Shown piece by piece: positions 19,689 to 28,269 of a DNA stretch of 36,152 nucleotides; position 1 is the stretch's first letter; each line of letters opens with the position of its first letter. Made by a program: the position numbers and the translations under genes. The notes under the pieces were generated by a model that worked only from the letters and a program-made list of their open reading frames with translations, did not search any database and was not told the DNA's origin. Source of the DNA: Ministeria vibrans ATCC 50519 (lineage: Eukaryota; Protista; Filasterea). The DNA lies in assembly GCA_943704425.1 (NCBI GenBank), contig CALSCP010002666.1, forward strand, positions 1 through 36,152, given 5' to 3'.

Positions 19689-22297
19689 TCACTTGCCCTT
19701 CATTTGCGCACGCTTCTTCATGAGCTCCTGCATAAAGCCAGAGGTGGGCGCGGCAGCTTCGCTCTCATCGTCACCGCCGGGCGGTGGGGGCGGCGGGGGC
19801 GGACCACCCGCCCCAGACGGAGGTGGCGGCGGGGCGCCGGCATCGGAGGGACCGGGCGGTGGCGGTGGGGGAGGAGGACCGCCCACGCCGCCAGGAGGTG
19901 GGGGCGGAGGAGGTGCAGGGGCCCCTCCAGCGTTGCCTCCGGGTGGCGGTGGAGGTGCCGGGCCACCGCCAGAGCTCGATGGTGCCATGGGCGCAGATGC
20001 AGTTACAGTTGTCTTCTTCAGCAGTGGCGCCGCTCCCATCATCTTAGGCTCGACCTTCTTACGTGCACCTGCTGGTCCCACGCTACACACAAAGAAAAAG
20101 ACACAACAACAGAAGTGAGACAAGGCCAGACGTGAGGCGAGACGTGACGACGTACCCAAAGGCACGGTTCATGACGCTGTCCTTGGATCCGGCTGCATTG
20201 TGCGTGACTCGCCACAGAAAGTAGGCGTTGAGGTCGATCGGCTGAAAGTACTTGCTAAAATAATGTGCTCGTACTTTCAAAACCTAAACAAAAAAACATA
20301 TTAATTTTATTGTTATTGTTACGTCTTATTAAATTTTTCCTATTTTTGTTGTTGTTAATGATAATGTACCTCAAACTCGCGACGCTTCTTGTTGAGTCTG
20401 CGCATGCCATACTTGTCGATAATCTCGGCGAGTCCGCCCTGGAACACTTCGTCGTTGTCAAAGTCGTATACGTGAAACTCGCGAAATGCCTTCTCTTGCT
20501 CGGGCGTGAACGATGGGCGCTGTCCGCCCTGCGTCGTCGCTCCGCCCCACGCACCCGACTTCATGGCAAATGACCCCGTTGCCATGCCACCCGCCTGCGG
20601 TCCGTACGACGCTGCAAACGACTGCCCCATCGCCGCCGGTGTCATCCCCGCTGCACCTGGCGGCATAATCGACCCGGCTCCCGGTCGCATCATAGACTGC
20701 ATGCCGGGCATTGTTGTCGTTTGCATGAACGACCCACCTCCCATCATTCCCATCTGTTGTTGTTGTTGCTGCAATTGTTGTTGTTGCATCATCTGTTGTT
20801 GCTGTTGTTGCATTTGTTGCTGTTGCATCATTTGTTGTTGCTGCATCATCTGTTGTTGTTGTTGCTGTTGTGGGTGCATAAACGATCCCTGCGGCATCAT
20901 TCCCATTTGTGGCATCATCTGTTGCTGTGGATGCTGCATCATCATCGAACCACCACCCATCATCATCTGTTGTGACGTCGGTTGCATCATGCTACCCATG
21001 CCTTGACCACCACCTGCTCCTCCCATGCCCATGCCTGGCTGCATCATACCCATGCCCGATTGCATCGTGTCCATGCCTGGCTGCACCATGCCCATGCCCG
21101 ACTGCATCGTACCCATGCCTGGCTGCATCGTACCCATGCCTGACTGCATCGTACCCATGCCTGACTGCATCGATCCCATGCCCATTGAGGCGCCCCGGTC
21201 CATCATTCCCTGCTGAGGTTGATGTTGATGTTGCTGCTGGTGCTGGTGCTGGTGCATCGGTGGTCTCTGTTGCATGGGTGGTGATGACATTGCCTGGGGA
21301 TCGGGGCGGCGCGTTGACGTGGCCGCTGGCGGAGGATTCTTCTGCTTGCCCTTCTTCGTCGACTGTTTCTTGCCCTGGAACATGTGCTCTTGGAGCTGTG
21401 CATCAAACAGCACGATGAGCTCGTCGGGGTCCTCGCATTGCACAATGTGCACCAGCGTCTTGTCCGTCATGGTGTCGTGCGTCATAAAGGCAACCAGGTT
21501 GCGGAACTGCGGAAAGCGCGCATCCTCGGGCAGTTGGCTCACAAACGACACATGGTCCATGCTGTAGGCCGCCATCACATGCTTGTCAAATGCATCCAGT
21601 ACCTCTATCGCCGACGACGAGACCGTCAGAAACACTTTGGTCGGCTGCGCACCAAACGAGAGAGAACACACAGTTGGTGAGTATTTCATCGGCGCTGTTT
21701 CAGTGCGACACCAGCACGCCATTCCAACGCGCACGACACACAGCAGTAAACGGACAAGGGTCGCCCCCCACCCCTATCCACCTGCTCCATCGCGACCACA
21801 TATCGCCTTCCGATGATCGGACGTCAAACGTAAAAAAAAATCCAAAGTGGACAGTTTGCGCACGACTCTAGCGACATGCAGGGCCGGCGCTCGCTCCACA
21901 GCACTATACGGCCGTATATAAACCGCTTGGCATCGCGCGCAAAGTTTCAAAAGACGCTCTTATCGTGAGCTGTTTTTAGAAGTGAGAACTTGAATCGCGA
22001 TAAAAAAAAAAAAAAAAAAGGGGNNNNNNNNNNCTCAGTGGCTGAGCTGGAAGCTGTAGCTCAAAAAAGCCGGGGTTGAAAAAAGGGAGAGAGAGAGCGA
22101 AAAAGAGAAAGAAAGAACCCCTCGAAAATAGCAGTGCCACACGGGGTGGTGGGATGGCGTACCGGGACTTGGCGAGCGCGGATCTGCTCGAAGCCAAGCA
22201 GCGCCGTCTCCAGCAGATGACTGTCCGGCACCTCAGCCGTTCCCAGATGCCGCACAAGAAAGCAGCCAGCATCGTCCTTTGAGCCTTTGCCACCCAT
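19689..22297 (-). CDS. PTB-cluster paralogue A: myristoylation signal, PTB-like domain, Q/M-rich region, shared helical domain, LKKT motif, polyproline, FAB-like C-terminus; exons 22297-22163, 21644-20370, 20283-20156, 20082-19689; 643 aa
   Basis: MGGKGS start; FLVRHLGTAEV...VFLTVSSSAIEV...VSFVS...LVAFMT...VHIVQC; FREFHVYDFDNDEVFQGG...KVRAHYFSKYFQPIDLNAYFLW; GFMQELMKKR. Phases consistent, but the first intron spans an N gap. Confidence 0.8.
21025..21180 (-). repeat. Coding 21-bp tandem repeat encoding (MGxMQ[S/P]G)n, next to a poly-Q tract at about 20755-20870
   Basis: About 7 degenerate units visible in both DNA and translation. Confidence 0.85.
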
Positions 22298-22443
22298 GTC
22301 AATGCCTGATACTACTGATTGATTCTTCGATCGACAATGATAAGAAAATTTAAAATTATGACTATTTCTATATTCGACAATATCGCCGATCATTTGAGAA
22401 CTTTGAAGTCATTAATTGTTGTTCACACTTCACAGTTTTGTTG
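22298..22443. promoter_or_regulatory. Putative compact bidirectional promoter/5' UTR region between PTB paralogues A and B
   Basis: Head-to-head ATGs separated by only 146 bp of AT-rich DNA. Confidence 0.55.
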
Positions 22444-23902
22444 ATGGGACAGGGACAGGGGAAGCATGCGTCAATGACGTCACAGTCCAAGGGCTACTTG
22501 GGCACGGTGGACGTGGAGTATTTGGGTGCGGCCCAGGTGAAAGGCGAGCCAACGTCGCTCGATGCGCTTGTCGGTGCCTTTTACGAAATTTCGCGCGCTC
22601 GCATCGCCGCGCGTCCCGTGCGCATTGCCCTGCCGACAACCCGAGAATCTGTGTGCTTCCTGGACGTCGCGGCACGCACGGAACTCATGAAGCTCGACCG
22701 TACAACGCTGCTGTGTGCCGTTGAACTTCCCCCCGCCAAGTTTGCATCGGCCGCCGCGCAGGGCATCGTCCTGCTCTCCACCGTCGACCGCCTCCAAAAG
22801 GTGGCCATGTGCCACGCACTCGTCTGCGGCGGCAAGGCTGCCGAGCTCGTCGACATTGTGAGCGACCTGGTGCGTCTTGAATCGGGCGGAGGCACACGCC
22901 CGTCGCACACGCCAGACGCCGCCGGAATGGCCATAGACCGCATGAAACAACAGCAGGGTCAACGGATGGCTGCCTACGAGTCCAAGCAACACCAAATGAG
23001 ACTCCAGCAGCAACAACAGGAGCAGCTTCGTCGAATCGCTCACCTTGCGCACACCAACGCCATGATGGGCGACGCAGCAGCCTCCGCCATGCCCCAGGAA
23101 CCCTCCTACGAGCTGTTCGAGTCCACAGCGACTCCTCAGGTGGCACCCGGCCAACTTCTGTCGCCGTACACTCTCAACGAAGACGAGCGCGCCAAGGAGG
23201 AGCTGGAGCGAGCCAAGGCCAAAGATGCGGCACTTGCTCTCGAGAAAAAGAACCTCGTCTTCGATCCGTACGCCGAGGACGGCAGTGCCCCTCTTACACC
23301 CAAGATGCAGGATAAGTTTGTGCGTTTCCACACGTACGATTGGAAGAAGGACAAAAAGTACGAGCAGGGCACCCAGGCGGTCGTCCACAAGTACAACCTC
23401 GACGCCCTCCCGCCTGCCCGCTTTCAGGAGGAGCTCGTCAAGATTCGCGCCCATTATTACAACAAATTCATCGAGTCCTTTGATCTTGAAGCTTACCGCC
23501 AGTGGCTTGCAGGCTCGCAGTAAGGACCCCGCGCAACACACCACATCGTACTGACTCAGACCTTCTCTTTGTAGACAACCATTCCAAGGCACCGCAGCCC
23601 CTACTGGTGGAGCTGCTGGAGGCGTACCCGCCCCAATGGGTGGAACACTCAGCGGATCAATGGGAGCAGGCATGGGCGGTATGGGTGGCACAGGTGTGGG
23701 TATGGGCATGGGCATGGCGCCGACCGGTGTGTACGGCACAATGCCGATGCAGTCCATGCAGATGATGCAGCAGCCGATGATGTTGCCCATGCAGTCCATG
23801 CAGATGCAGGCTCCTCAGGCCATGCCGCAAATGTACATGCAACCTCAGCAGCAGCAGCAGCAGTACCCGTGGAACGGCGGGAATGGATCCATGATGTGGT
23901 GA
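22444..23902 (+). CDS. PTB-cluster paralogue B: MG start, PTB-like domain, Q-rich coil, shared helical domain, M/G/Q-rich tail; exons 22444-23519 and 23575-23902; 467 aa
   Basis: MGQGQG; VDVEYLGAAQV...CHALVC; FVRFHTYDWKKDKKYEQG...KIRAHYYNKFIESFDLEAYRQW. A GTAAGG...tttgtAG intron joins ORF 23636-23902 in frame. Confidence 0.82.
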
Positions 23903-24209
23903 TCTTTCTCTTGTGTTGTAATGAATAATGAATAATGAATAATCCAAAAAAAATAATAATTATTATTATTATTATTATTATTTGAGTTCGTGTGGGTTTC
24001 GTTCTCACGTTCTGCATCGCTGTGCCTACGTATCCATCCTTGGTGGCGTGTAGTCGTGTACTAGGCTTTGTCGCCCACGCACCTCTTGGCTCCCACGACA
24101 CTCAGCACGAACAACACACACAAAAAAAAAAGAAAAAAAAAAGGAGGCTTTTTATAGAAGCTCTCGCAGTTGGCGCACAAGACTTGCTTGGGGACCTTCT
24201 CACGCGACC

Positions 24210-27200
24210 ATGGGCAACCAGCTTGGGCGGGAGAACATCGCCGAGGGCGACTTCTTTCCCGTCACCTATCTGGGCAGCAGCTACGTCGAGACGCGCACCA
24301 ACCTCGATGCAGCCATGGAGGCGCTTGCGGCCGTCCTCTCGCGAACGCCGGTGCACCGACGCATGGTGGTGTACGTCAGCGGCCATGGCATGTCGCTGAT
24401 AGCGGCCGAGACCGAGAAGGAAGTCGCGCGCTATCCGTTTGCCCGCATTGCACTGTGCACCCAACTGCCAAACAGCCCGCAAATGCCCCTCTACAACAAC
24501 CTCCTTGCCATCATTGCACTCGACAGCCTCAGCGGCGCCAACAACTGCCACATCTTCCAGGCGCAGTCGCCCTTCGAGGTCGTCCAGTCCTTTGACATGT
24601 ACCTCCACTCGGCCATTAGCCAAGTGGGCGGCGGTCCCGGTGCCGCCGCTGCTGCTGCTGCTGCTGCAAACGCCGGCAGAAGATTTCGCCTGCAAGACGA
24701 CGACACGTCCTTCCTTGACGACGACGACGACGATGATGATGATGACAACCTCTATCGTCCTGCCGCTCACTCACATCACGGTGAGAGACACGCTCACTTT
24801 GCCGACGAAGATCCCTCGGGCATCCTCCGTCGTGGCTACGGCACCCCCTCCGCCGCGACCAATGCCGAGCGATTTGCCCAACCTCGCGTACTCTACGTTG
24901 ACGCCGAACGAGACGCTGCCTATCGCGAATTTCACACCTACAACTTCACCGGTGACGACGTCTTCATGACGGGCGTCGTCGAGGTGGTGGACGCCCTCAA
25001 AATCGACACAATCCAGGACGAACTGGAACGCGACTTTGAAATTATGAAAATCAAGGCGCACTACTTCTCGCGCTACTTTGCCGACGTCGACCTCAACGAA
25101 TACTACCAGTGGCGCGTCGGTCGCGACGCCAACGGCTATCCTCTAGGCAAGGGTCCCGACCGTCCCTCGCGAGAAAACTCTACCGTGGCATCCGTCGCTC
25201 GCGCCGACACTATCCACAGCACAGGCGGTGGTGGTGCTCCTCCTCCACCTCCTCCTTCTGGTCCCGACGATGGTGGTGCACCCGCACCCCCTCCTCCTCC
25301 CCCACCCGGTGGTGGTCCCGATGTGCCGGGTCCCCCCCCACCGCCCCCTCCCGGTATGATGGGCGGTATGATGGGTGCAGGCGGGGCAGGCGGATTTGCC
25401 GCCATGATTGCCGGTGCCAAACTGAAAAAGTCAGCTGGCGAAGGCGGTGGCGGCAGTGGTAGTGGCGCTGGCGCTGGCGCTGGCTCGGACTCTCAAAAGG
25501 GCCTCGGAGGTGCCTCGATGATGGAGGAAGTGCTGCGCCGACGTGAAGAAATGCGCAAAAAGGGTGCAGGTCTTATCAGCGACAAGGCATCGCTCGAGAA
25601 GGGCGGCAACCGCACACCGGCTGAGGACCCGCTCTTGGCGGCTCGTGCACGTCTCAAAAACCGCACCGGAGGCGTCTCCACCGGCGCCAACACAAACCTC
25701 GATGCAGACGCACCTCCTCCACCCCCTCCACCCGGTGGCAGTTCCAGTGCACGCAACAACAACCACAGCGACGACTTTGCGCCGCCACCGCCACCACCGG
25801 GTCTCTTTGCCGCCGCTGCCTTCAGCAAGACCTCCAAATCCACATCGGCAACGTCGACGACAAATGCCTCTTCGTCCTTCTCTCCACCTCCTCCGCCTCC
25901 TCCGTCGGCCCTCGCTTCGGACGCACCCCCTCCGCCACCGCTTGCTGCTGCCACCTCGGTAGCGGCTGCCAAGGCCAAGTCGCCTCCTGCAGGTGCCGTC
26001 AACGTCATGGCCAGCCGGGATCCCGTCGTCGTTCAGCGCTCAGACTCGATGAAGGCCGTGCCGCCCTCTTCCGCGACCGTCGATTCCCCACCGCCGCCAC
26101 CACCGGCAGCGACGGGACGTGCGCCGCCCATTTCACGCTCTGGAAGCATTGCGGACCAGCTCAGACCAAAGGGTGGTGCGGGTGTGCAGCGCAGCAACAC
26201 AATGAAGCCGGGCGTCGACGTGGACTGGCGACCCGACATGTCCGAGTTTGACGTGGTCTTTCTGGGAGCAACTGAAATTTCGCGGGTGGACCGCACCACA
26301 TGCAACCTTGCACGCGATAAGGTGCTCACGGCCACAATCCAGGCCAAGCCCATGTTGGTCGTGTTCCAAGACAAGGGCATCTCCGTGACAGACAAGTCCA
26401 AGTCGCGCACATTTGTGCAGGTCGACCTGGCTCTCATTGGCTACTCGGCCATCCTAACGCGCTTCAACGAGAACATGGGCTGCTTCTGTGTGGTCGCGCA
26501 GGATGTGGGCGATCGCAATCCTCTCTGCTTGCTCTTCAAGACGGAAGATCCCGAATGGGTCATGCAAACCTTCTTTAAGAAGTCGCGCGAGTTCAAGACG
26601 CGCATGAAGATTGATCTGGGCAAAAAGGAAGACCGCACGCGCAAGATGGGCAAGCAGCCCAAGACTCAGCAAATGCACGTCGCCGAAGATGGCTCGCTGG
26701 AGCGTGGGCCCTCGTCGGCCCAAGACAAGGCACCCGCGGCGAAATTGGCGCAGAACGCTCGTTCGAGCACTCGCGAGCGCGAAGAGCGCTTTCCCTCGCC
26801 TGCAGCCGCACTCAGTGGCGTCACCGAAGAGGCCGAACCCGCATCACCTGCGCCCGTACGTGCCCCCCCTTCTATCACCACGTCGCCTCCACTGCCCGAT
26901 CCCAGTGCCTCCTCTCCCGCCAACGTATCGCCACCGTCGACGCGCGTGAACATTGTCAAATCAGCCACGGTCGACTCGGTGACACCGCCCGACGAGCTGC
27001 CCTCACAAGCGGCCCTCGACCGCATGCAAGAGGAGCGCGACATGGCCGCAAACTTGGCAGCCGCCGCGGCCATTGATGCAGCGCTTGCGGGCCAGGAATC
27101 TTCCACGTCGCTTGCCAAGGCGAACGGCAAGGGCGATTCACCTTTTGGCATGCCGCCGGCCATCGCGGAGGAGACAGAACCTGAGGCCAAGACGCCCGAC

Positions 27201-27770
27201 GTCACCTCGTCGTTGGCTCCGCCACCCGCAACAAGCATGTTCAGCAACGATCCGACCTTTGAGGACAACCGTTCTATCGGATCAACGGGCTCGCCCAAGG
27301 TGAAACGGAAGGAAGAGAAGGAGCGTGCAAAGAGAGAGGCGCGCGAGGCAAAAGAGCGCGAAAAGGAAGCCAAGGAGCGCGAGAAGGAGGCGCTCAAGGC
27401 GAAGAAGGACGCCGACAGGAAGCGAAAGAAGCACGCTCCCAAATCGCCGGCAGCCTCCATCCGCAGCACTGTCTCCAGCAACGGCGGCGGTGGCGGCGGT
27501 GGTGGATTCATGAAGCCTCCGTCGGCAACGCGCGCCTGGGGCGACGACAGCGACGAAGAAGACCAGGTCATGGCCAATGTGCACGAGACGAAGCGCCTGC
27601 AAGCGGAAATGCTGCGCGAGAAGAGCGTCCTCAAGGGTTACATCTCCCTCATGAAGATGGCCAAGAAAGGCTCCAAGGAACGCTACAATGCCGAGCAGCT
27701 CGTGGCCGCGTCCGAGGCCAAGATTGAGCGTCTCAAGCGCGATCTCACGCAAGTGTCCAGTGGCTGGTGA
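24210..27770 (+). CDS. PTB-cluster paralogue C: MG start, PTB-like domain, shared helical domain, polyproline, VASP-like GAB-FAB, polyproline, second PTB-like domain, coiled coils; single exon; 1186 aa
   Basis: Uninterrupted ORF. FPVTYLGSSYV...CHIFQA; YREFHTYNFTGDDVF...KIKAHYFSRYFADVDLNEYYQW; GFAAMIAGAKLKKS...SMMEEVLRRR; FDVVFLGATEI...CLLFKT. Confidence 0.88.
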   Translation: MGNQLGRENIAEGDFFPVTYLGSSYVETRTNLDAAMEALAAVLSRTPVHRRMVVYVSGHGMSLIAAETEKEVARYPFARIALCTQLPNSPQMPLYNNLLAIIALDSLSGANNCHIFQAQSPFEVVQSFDMYLHSAISQVGGGPGAAAAAAAAANAGRRFRLQDDDTSFLDDDDDDDDDDNLYRPAAHSHHGERHAHFADEDPSGILRRGYGTPSAATNAERFAQPRVLYVDAERDAAYREFHTYNFTGDDVFMTGVVEVVDALKIDTIQDELERDFEIMKIKAHYFSRYFADVDLNEYYQWRVGRDANGYPLGKGPDRPSRENSTVASVARADTIHSTGGGGAPPPPPPSGPDDGGAPAPPPPPPPGGGPDVPGPPPPPPPGMMGGMMGAGGAGGFAAMIAGAKLKKSAGEGGGGSGSGAGAGAGSDSQKGLGGASMMEEVLRRREEMRKKGAGLISDKASLEKGGNRTPAEDPLLAARARLKNRTGGVSTGANTNLDADAPPPPPPPGGSSSARNNNHSDDFAPPPPPPGLFAAAAFSKTSKSTSATSTTNASSSFSPPPPPPPSALASDAPPPPPLAAATSVAAAKAKSPPAGAVNVMASRDPVVVQRSDSMKAVPPSSATVDSPPPPPPAATGRAPPISRSGSIADQLRPKGGAGVQRSNTMKPGVDVDWRPDMSEFDVVFLGATEISRVDRTTCNLARDKVLTATIQAKPMLVVFQDKGISVTDKSKSRTFVQVDLALIGYSAILTRFNENMGCFCVVAQDVGDRNPLCLLFKTEDPEWVMQTFFKKSREFKTRMKIDLGKKEDRTRKMGKQPKTQQMHVAEDGSLERGPSSAQDKAPAAKLAQNARSSTREREERFPSPAAALSGVTEEAEPASPAPVRAPPSITTSPPLPDPSASSPANVSPPSTRVNIVKSATVDSVTPPDELPSQAALDRMQEERDMAANLAAAAAIDAALAGQESSTSLAKANGKGDSPFGMPPAIAEETEPEAKTPDVTSSLAPPPATSMFSNDPTFEDNRSIGSTGSPKVKRKEEKERAKREAREAKEREKEAKEREKEALKAKKDADRKRKKHAPKSPAASIRSTVSSNGGGGGGGGFMKPPSATRAWGDDSDEEDQVMANVHETKRLQAEMLREKSVLKGYISLMKMAKKGSKERYNAEQLVAASEAKIERLKRDLTQVSSGW

Positions 27771-28269
27771 ATGAAACCAGAGCTTGTGATACGGAGTGAC
27801 GGTGAGCGGTCACGAAAGAAAGTGCGGCGAGTGAGTGAGGGTAGCATTGAGAGTGTATCAGTTCTCAAAGGAATTTTAAGTTGATTTTTTGAGTGATTGG
27901 ATGTGATGAGTACGTACGAAGTACGGCGTAGTGGATCTCAAAACTTTATCAAGGTGCGTTTTTGTATCTGAAAGACTTCGTGGTTTAATATTTTCAATTG
28001 GACTCTCAGAAAACTGAAAAGTCAGTCATTTTAGATTTTTAGTTCAAGACTTATTTTCCCGACTGATAATCCTTCTCAAAAAGTAGCTCAACTTGCCGCT
28101 ACAATAGAAACTGGGTATGGCGAGTGAGGGAGCGGGGTTTTTTAAATCATGTCCTTTTTCTTTGGGACGAAAAGGGGATAATTTGTAACGTTGACTCACT
28201 AGAGGGATTGCCCATCACTTGTGACAACGCTGACCCGTGCGGCACCATTGCGTGTGACGTGGGNNNNNN

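Follow-up and report, generated by a model that had tools for sequence, protein, structure and literature searches.

A VASP-like candidate actin-loading module in a predicted double-PTB protein of the filasterean Ministeria vibrans

Locus and transcript of gene C

Contig CALSCP010002666.1 of the filasterean Ministeria vibrans ATCC 50519 (assembly GCA_943704425.1; 2860 contigs, 29.7 Mb) was analysed over a stretch of 36,152 nucleotides, referred to here as the window. The subject of this study is gene C, which encodes a protein with a proline-rich, VASP-like stretch set between an N-terminal PTB domain and a second, predicted one. Two paralogues, A and B, precede it in the window. An original prediction, made from the sequence alone, had described the stretch as an Ena/VASP-like EVH2 actin-polymerase module grafted onto a PTB protein. 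The strings quoted for that idea were all recovered from one frame of the single open reading frame (ORF) of gene C, and the module start given as 25225 has to be corrected to 25224, where the reading frame begins.

The coding sequence of gene C occupies 24210-27770 on the plus strand, stop codon included, and is read from the ORF list and from RNA-type contigs as one open frame of 1186 residues starting with MGNQLGRE. RNA-type contigs from four runs of one organism cover 24150-27896 without a joint, and one of them, an X1 contig, runs out at 27896 in a loose stretch of A. Parts of the gene also occur in marine RNA-seq data from a true polyA run (24150-24316, 24809-24996 and 25492-25735), the last of which spans the FAB-like motif described below. 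Therefore gene C is a real, intronless, transcribed and polyadenylated gene, with a 3′ untranslated region at 27771-27896 that extends to the poly(A) addition site.

A module with VASP-like order and spacing

Residues 343-486 of the gene C product hold, in this order, polyproline, a motif resembling the G-actin-binding (GAB) motif of VASP, a Gly-rich linker, a helix resembling the F-actin-binding (FAB) motif and a weaker motif of the LK type. The polyproline is made up of three tracts (P6, P7 and P7; residues 344-349, 360-366 and 375-381; 25236-25355, plus strand, as for all features of gene C), which lie directly N-terminal of the GAB-like motif and are kept in the only ortholog, P0001. They are candidate profilin-binding sites, as the precedent of VASP and formins would suggest, and judged by sequence only they supply the central proline-rich region expected of an Ena/VASP protein.

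The GAB-like, or WH2-like, motif is GGFAAMIAGAKLKKS (residues 394-408; 25389-25433). It is singled out by its likeness to VASP, by its conservation and by an actin model, and it aligns gap-free with human VASP 225-237, with 10 of 13 residues identical. The GAB motif of human VASP reads 223-APGLAAAIAGAKLRKVS-239 and its FAB motif covers residues 259-278 (PMC10340426; the GAB as in PDB entry 2pbd_V). The human strings given in the original prediction agree with that paper, and for the GAB motif also with the 2pbd_V alignment.

A Gly/Ser/Ala-rich linker of about 24 residues (25434-25499), which shows indels and poor conservation against P0001, leads from the GAB-like motif to the FAB-like one; its length falls inside the 18-40 residues reported for the GAB-to-FAB linkers of Ena/VASP proteins (PMC3034019). 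The FAB-like element is an amphipathic basic helix, GLGGASMMEEVLRRREEMRKK (residues 431-451; 25500-25562), which is conserved and has a putative role in F-actin binding. Its stretch GGASMMEEVLRRR can be aligned with the VASP FAB only when a gap of 3-4 residues is allowed; the alignment has no database support, and 12 of 12 residues are kept in the ortholog. The third, weak LK-type motif, DPLLAARARLKNRT (residues 473-486; 25626-25667), follows it. L475, R479, L482, K483 and R485 alone are kept there in P0001, and the spacing is shorter than that of a canonical WH2 motif. Three LK-type motifs are found inside 95 residues. The predicted resemblance to VASP in order and spacing, from polyproline through the conserved GAB-like motif and its linker to the conserved FAB-like helix, was borne out.

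Conservation of the motifs in an ortholog

P0001 is a protein of 991 residues encoded on a 3.3-kb metagenome contig. It is 46% identical overall to the gene C product and is the sole relative of gene C found in any protein collection. Word-based protein searches with residues 1-500 and 670-860 of gene C returned no family member besides P0001, metagenome scans with an alignment of the second PTB domain and with an alignment of the module gave no match, and a search of the ESM Atlas gave no usable match. An exact look-up in the protein collection found neither gene C nor a protein of a neighbouring contig. The database gene call of P0001 runs into an intron (L007, 2900-3331), which gives it a Cys-rich microsatellite tail; two further downstream exons at its locus encode the conserved C-terminal region, and the contig stops before the stop codon.

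The disordered residues 312-659 of gene C were aligned with P0001 and scanned without bias in windows of 12 residues. With the three motif blocks and all Pro and Gly-Gly columns set aside, the background identity of this region comes to 12.7%. The best-conserved window is the FAB-like MMEEVLRRREEM (12/12, binomial P 5e-10) and the second best is the GAB-like AAMIAGAKLKKS (9/12, binomial P 7e-7), while the third LK-type motif is weakly conserved (binomial P 0.008). Because the two best windows of the scan, set against the 12.7% background, are the GAB-like and FAB-like motifs, their conservation goes beyond chance. The linkers that separate the motifs diverge freely between gene C and P0001 and contain indels. 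In this one pair of sequences, such a pattern is what functional short linear motifs show.

Predicted complex with actin

The conventional actin of the genome is 96-99% identical to animal cytoplasmic actins. An assembly gap, together with a CT microsatellite, breaks up its gene after about residue 337 (C932/L001, C2000/L004 and C1139/L005), and the C-terminal third is found at the ends of two other contigs. We therefore used as partner the full-length database actin P0115 (376 residues; 96% identity with the genomic fragment). It was modelled with residues 383-420 of gene C, alongside controls.

The interface score ipSAE of this pair was 0.65, as against 0.01 for the best control; the mark used for this score was attained by 51 of 78 solved complexes and by 2 of 108 mismatched pairs. 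The runs shared at least 65% of their contacts, with a partner confidence (predicted local distance difference test, pLDDT) of at least 57. The confident interface joins gene C residues 393-409 with actin residues 21-29, 144-150, 168-169 and 342-352. F396, A397, M399, I400 and A401 touch actin 144-150, 168-169 and 345-352, with I400 in the hydrophobic cleft, and L405, K406 and K407 touch actin 24-26 and 342-346. The modelled interface is the canonical WH2/GAB site, namely the barbed-end cleft between actin subdomains 1 and 3, so that an amphipathic helix followed by LKK[TVS] is placed in this cleft in silico. The G-actin complex prediction proposed at the outset gave a positive outcome in silico.

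The short amphipathic helix followed by LKK[ST], its modelled position in the cleft and the polyproline ahead of it (often seen in WASP and WIP) are shared with WH2 regulators such as thymosin β4, WIP/verprolin, the V region of WASP/WAVE and MIM; the KLKK core occurs as in thymosin β4 (PMC10340426). Gene C differs from these regulators in lacking a match to the Pfam WH2 model PF02205 and in having an Ala-rich helix of the VASP type rather than LLxxI.

As several LK-type motifs follow one another in a disordered region, the protein might instead be a tandem-WH2 nucleator or a monomer-delivery factor of the Spire, Cobl or VopL/VopF kind, which would form a membrane seed instead of tracking barbed ends. 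The close packing of the three motifs and the lack of a VASP-type tetramerisation domain are in keeping with this, and the VASP FAB itself has been considered WH2-like (PMC3034019). Yet the actin model covers the first motif alone, which is the one well-supported motif in gene C, and the third is poorly conserved with non-canonical spacing. The linkers, about 24 residues long, vary and are rich in Gly, linkers and flanks are unrelated to those of the named nucleators, and there is no KIND or FYVE domain or other feature of those families. Polyproline directly upstream of the motif is, moreover, typical of the hand-over of profilin-actin to a barbed end. We regard a tandem-WH2 nucleator as unlikely.

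Putative targeting domains and C-terminal region

A candidate N-myristoylation signal, MGNQLGRE, with Gly2 and a small residue at position 6, is encoded at 24210-24233, and the ORF list shows no in-frame start codon upstream of 24210. The same kind of start is present in P0001 (MGGQISKE), paralogue A (MGGKGSKD) and paralogue B (MGQGQGKH), so that an MG start with a small residue at position 6 is seen in 4 of 4 family members. The original prediction had called the protein lipid-anchored. The start fits N-myristoylation in the ortholog and both paralogues as well as in gene C, and it makes the gene C product a candidate for acylation.

The first PTB domain (residues 18-120; 24261-24569) was identified with Pfam PF08416 (E 5.5e-9; 36.6 bits, cut-off 27), which confirms that gene C encodes a PTB protein. 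It is followed by a helical domain (residues 237-306; 24918-25127) that is common to paralogues A and B and P0001 and near-invariant in the family alignment. Its own-genome matches lie at 23314-23520 and 20188-20286.

Residues 660-811 form a highly conserved block that was missed by Pfam. An AlphaFold2 (AF2) model of this part has the topology of the PH superfold, with one helix inserted between the first two of its seven strands and another at the C-terminus, at a modest mean pLDDT of 57.6. The top among the Foldseek matches listed for the model are PTB domains, those of APPL1, ICAP1, X11, GULP1, Numb, EPS8 and ARH, with E-values of 1.5e-6 to 6e-5, and the identity between gene C and P0001 in this domain is 67%. 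The predicted fold identifies residues of about 679-794 (26244-26591) as a second, central PTB domain, PTB2, which is new here and had been overlooked in the original prediction. PTB1 is therefore assigned by a sequence model and PTB2 by its predicted fold, and on this assignment the actin-like module would be flanked by two PTB domains.

Between the module and PTB2, the disordered region holds five more polyproline tracts (residues 502-632; 25713-26105), which are partly kept in P0001. Two conserved islands were also observed in it, QRS[DE]SM (26034-26051) and R[SR]xTM.PG just ahead of PTB2 (26190-26204); by sequence, both look like basophilic kinase sites.

A Lys/Glu-rich charged stretch (residues 1030-1074; 27297-27431) was noted by reading the sequence. 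The protein ends in a two-helix hairpin (residues 1114-1184; 27549-27761), a candidate oligomerisation element that is kept in the downstream exons of the P0001 locus. A single-sequence AF2 model predicts an antiparallel hairpin at pLDDT 83.8, with helices at model positions 20-56 and 62-90. A PDB sequence search with the hairpin gave no match, and Foldseek returned generic folds and nothing specific. EAKIERLKRDL, which lies within the last 25 residues, had been taken as an oligomerising coiled coil. The C-terminus is indeed predicted to be helical, as a hairpin of this kind and not as a VASP-type tetramerisation coil. Just N-terminal of the hairpin is WGDDSDEED (27537-27563; GWGDDSDEEE in P0001), which could be a cluster of casein-kinase-type sites or an acidic-Trp motif that binds Arp2/3 or adaptor proteins.

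A putative membrane-tethered scaffold for actin loading

All the above suggest a possible role for gene C. We put the probability at roughly 0.5 that it encodes a lineage-restricted, myristoylated double-PTB scaffold which brings in profilin-actin and G-actin so that filaments grow locally. The myristoyl-glycine would tether the protein to the membrane, and the PTB domains, whose fold binds NPxY tails, would target it to ligands there. The disordered stretch between them would be the actin-loading module. Its polyproline tracts would serve to recruit profilin-actin, the WH2-like motif next to them (F396, I400, L405-K406-K407) would bind the monomer at its barbed-end cleft, and the basic amphipathic helix about 24 residues on might contact the filament or a second monomer. 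Clustering at the membrane could then give faster local growth of barbed ends, for example in the filopodial arms of a filasterean. The product would probably supply filaments at the membrane with actin.

A WH2 motif together with a FAB suffices for processive elongation once clustered on a surface (PMC3034019), which supports the logic of such a module. The genome also encodes a profilin (contig C2121), the actin described above and a genuine Ena-type gene, and we count their presence in favour of the proposed scaffold. In a stronger form of the idea, gene C would be an independently arisen polymerase of the VASP kind, which is myristoylated, docks through its PTB domains on NPxY tails such as that of integrin β, and drives processive growth in filopodia. 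We hold this form to be rather doubtful.

Several observations weigh against an actin-loading role. The module has no significant match to GAB, FAB or WH2, its PDB E-values being 0.04-0.5. The only actin-binding peptide that it matches in the PDB is 2pbd_V, the polyproline-GAB peptide of VASP, at E 0.038 with the polyproline included, 0.49 with the GAB-like motif alone and 0.17 with the two-sequence family profile; the alignment runs continuously across polyproline and GAB (query 36-71, chain 1-37). A profile hidden Markov model of the module, run against 1.84 billion representatives, recovered P0001 alone and no Ena/VASP protein. Pfam WH2 (PF02205) gave no match at E up to 10, either to residues 339-497 or to residues 391-497, and the Pfam search of the module returned noise alone (Serglycin, E >1). 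VASP_tetra (PF08776) had no match genome-wide at E up to 1, and the C-terminal hairpin lies 600 residues away from the module. The Ala/Gly-rich composition of the GAB-like motif raises the odds of a chance likeness, and the conservation statistics come from a single ortholog pair. Structures of actin bound to the VASP GAB, and to many WH2 motifs, have been solved, so that the confident complex may reflect the memory of solved complexes and thus likeness rather than binding. By database statistics alone, the likeness of the module to VASP is no better than chance.

A rival explanation is a protein whose motifs bind partners other than actin, that is, a PTB signalling adaptor without direct actin activity, with its VASP likeness due to chance in a composition rich in Ala, Gly and Lys. 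Calmodulin, membrane or a kinase could be the partners of the basic amphipathic helices, and the polyproline tracts could be ligands of SH3, WW or EVH1 domains. Besides the missing profile and Pfam matches, the E-value of 0.49 for the GAB-like motif alone equals that of an unrelated mycobacterial antigen, the FAB-like helix matches designer repeat proteins alone, by summation over their repeats, and the other conserved islands of the disordered region resemble kinase sites. Against such an adaptor stand the complex model, which puts precisely the conserved residues into the WH2 cleft with controls at 0.01, and the agreement of part order and spacings with Ena/VASP. Paralogue A also retains LKKT, polyproline and a helix, though in a rearranged order. 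We consider a non-actin adaptor possible but doubtful.

Two further candidates were set aside. The matches to designer pentatricopeptide proteins in the PDB, with E-values down to 2e-21, are an artefact: an idealised repeat is matched some ten times at 5 bits each, and the scores add up. The idea that the FAB-like helix is a WASP C helix or a formin DAD has no support in PDB searches.

Relation to Ena/VASP and other known systems

The gene C product is not a true Ena/VASP protein, because it has no EVH1 domain, no tetramerisation domain and no significant sequence similarity to the family. At its N-terminus a PTB domain takes the place of EVH1, and a genome-wide WH1 search matched other contigs and nothing in the window. 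The name EVH2, in the sense of homology, is not supported for the module, whose profile recovered P0001 alone.

A genuine Ena/Mena-type EVH1 is encoded elsewhere in the genome, split between C1888:7447-7617 (L017 448-618) and C1228:34857-35021 (L016 4358-4522, minus strand); an intron is the probable site of the break. Both parts match the EVH1 of Mena in the PDB at E 9e-18 and 2e-14. The exon after the C1228 part encodes a GAB-like AVTAAALSASRLRKS, plus DELQKKLKAKRDAA, and a BLASTP comparison of this exon with the gene C module gave E 0.32. Given the differing GAB-like stretch and this E-value, nothing indicates that the resident Ena/VASP gene recently supplied the module, and the original notion of a grafted module is not supported. 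A weak own-genome match of the module on contig C2822 was dismissed as Gly-rich noise.

True EVH2 homology, through shuffling that joined part of an Ena/VASP gene to a PTB gene within the filastereans, would account for the 10/13 identity to a metazoan-type GAB (AAxIAGAKL[KR]K) and for the similar polyproline-GAB and GAB-FAB spacing. The host lineage does have Ena/VASP (PMC3748353, and the resident EVH1 gene), a family which is restricted to Amorphea (PMC3748353). Against this explanation are the different GAB-like stretch of the resident gene, the missing tetramerisation domain and the failure of the profile search to recover any Ena/VASP protein, and the motifs are too short to tell shuffling from convergence. 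Such shuffling seems quite improbable. The VASP likeness may come from old shared ancestry, motif shuffling or convergence, and the sequence suggests a protein that would be VASP-like in logic. The earlier view of gene C as a VASP analogue is supported to that extent.

What gene C shares with Ena/VASP is the order of polyproline, GAB-like motif, Gly-rich linker and basic FAB-like helix, the predicted GAB-type binding in the actin cleft, and an N-terminal targeting domain of the PH superfold. It differs in having two PTB domains instead of EVH1, an N-myristoylation signal, five polyproline tracts after the module, and a two-helix hairpin about 600 residues downstream in place of VASP_tetra. Comparison with the VCA region of the WASP family showed no acidic region after the FAB-like helix, and paralogue A terminates right behind its helix. 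The acidic WGDDSDEED lies 660 residues downstream of the FAB-like helix, which amounts to a reversed VCA order. As no C and A regions with Trp follow the motif, gene C does not encode an Arp2/3 activator of the WASP type.

Among PTB adaptors, PTB1 matches a Pfam model that also covers tensin and Eps8, and PTB2 resembles the NPxY-binding class of Dab, Numb, ICAP1 and EPS8. Fe65 (APBB1) carries a pair of PTB domains and recruits Mena, whereas in Eps8 the architecture combines a PTB domain with a C-terminal actin-binding region. Eps8, Fe65/APBB1, Dab, Numb and ICAP1 are unlike gene C in that none is known to have a polyproline-GAB-FAB-like module between PTB domains or an N-myristoylation signal.

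Polyproline and WH2-like motifs form a common, portable module of an already known kind. What is new here is the central second PTB domain, the conserved C-terminal hairpin and the MG starts in four family members; no published description of such an architecture was found in the literature searched, and the databases hold almost no relatives. To our knowledge, Ena/VASP is regarded as the single family whose members recruit profilin and combine a WH2-like site for monomers with a site for filaments in one actin polymerase. If the scaffold proposed for gene C is right, the VASP-type module would be portable, or able to evolve more than once, on a chassis of a lipid anchor and two PTB domains, in a unicellular relative of animals that is rich in filopodia, and receptors bearing NPxY would have had a direct link to actin assembly that predates animals. 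Should the motifs fail to bind actin, the finding would come down to a new orphan family of double-PTB adaptors.

Neighbouring paralogues and other genes

Paralogue A (19689-22393, minus strand) has several exons, which were read separately and unjoined. It starts with MGGKGSKD and has a PTB domain, a long Q/M/G-rich region and an intron-split helical domain. Its last exon (19689-20099, minus strand; splice sites from the sequence) encodes APLLKKT, four polyproline tracts, SGFMQELMKKRAQMKGK and the stop codon. The terminal helix SGFMQELMKKRAQMKGK is related to the FAB-like helix of gene C, and a PDB search with it returned noise only. The presence of the same three types of part in a different order argues for parts that work together.

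Paralogue B (22444-23941, plus strand) contains a 55-nucleotide GT..AG intron at 23520-23574, as spliced contigs from two runs confirm. The exon behind it, the second, codes for a tail rich in Q, M and G, and the gene has no polyproline or LKK module.

Two further observations were made outside the window. A WASP-like gene on C2642 (L010/L012) comprises WH1 pieces, a CRIB-like IGKPSDFRHIGHIG, long polyproline and a canonical WH2, GGLLEEIQRGRKLNHV. A PTB-like stretch with remote likeness to PTB1 (E 1.4e-6) lies at C1214:41818-42105, within an open frame of 1816 residues.

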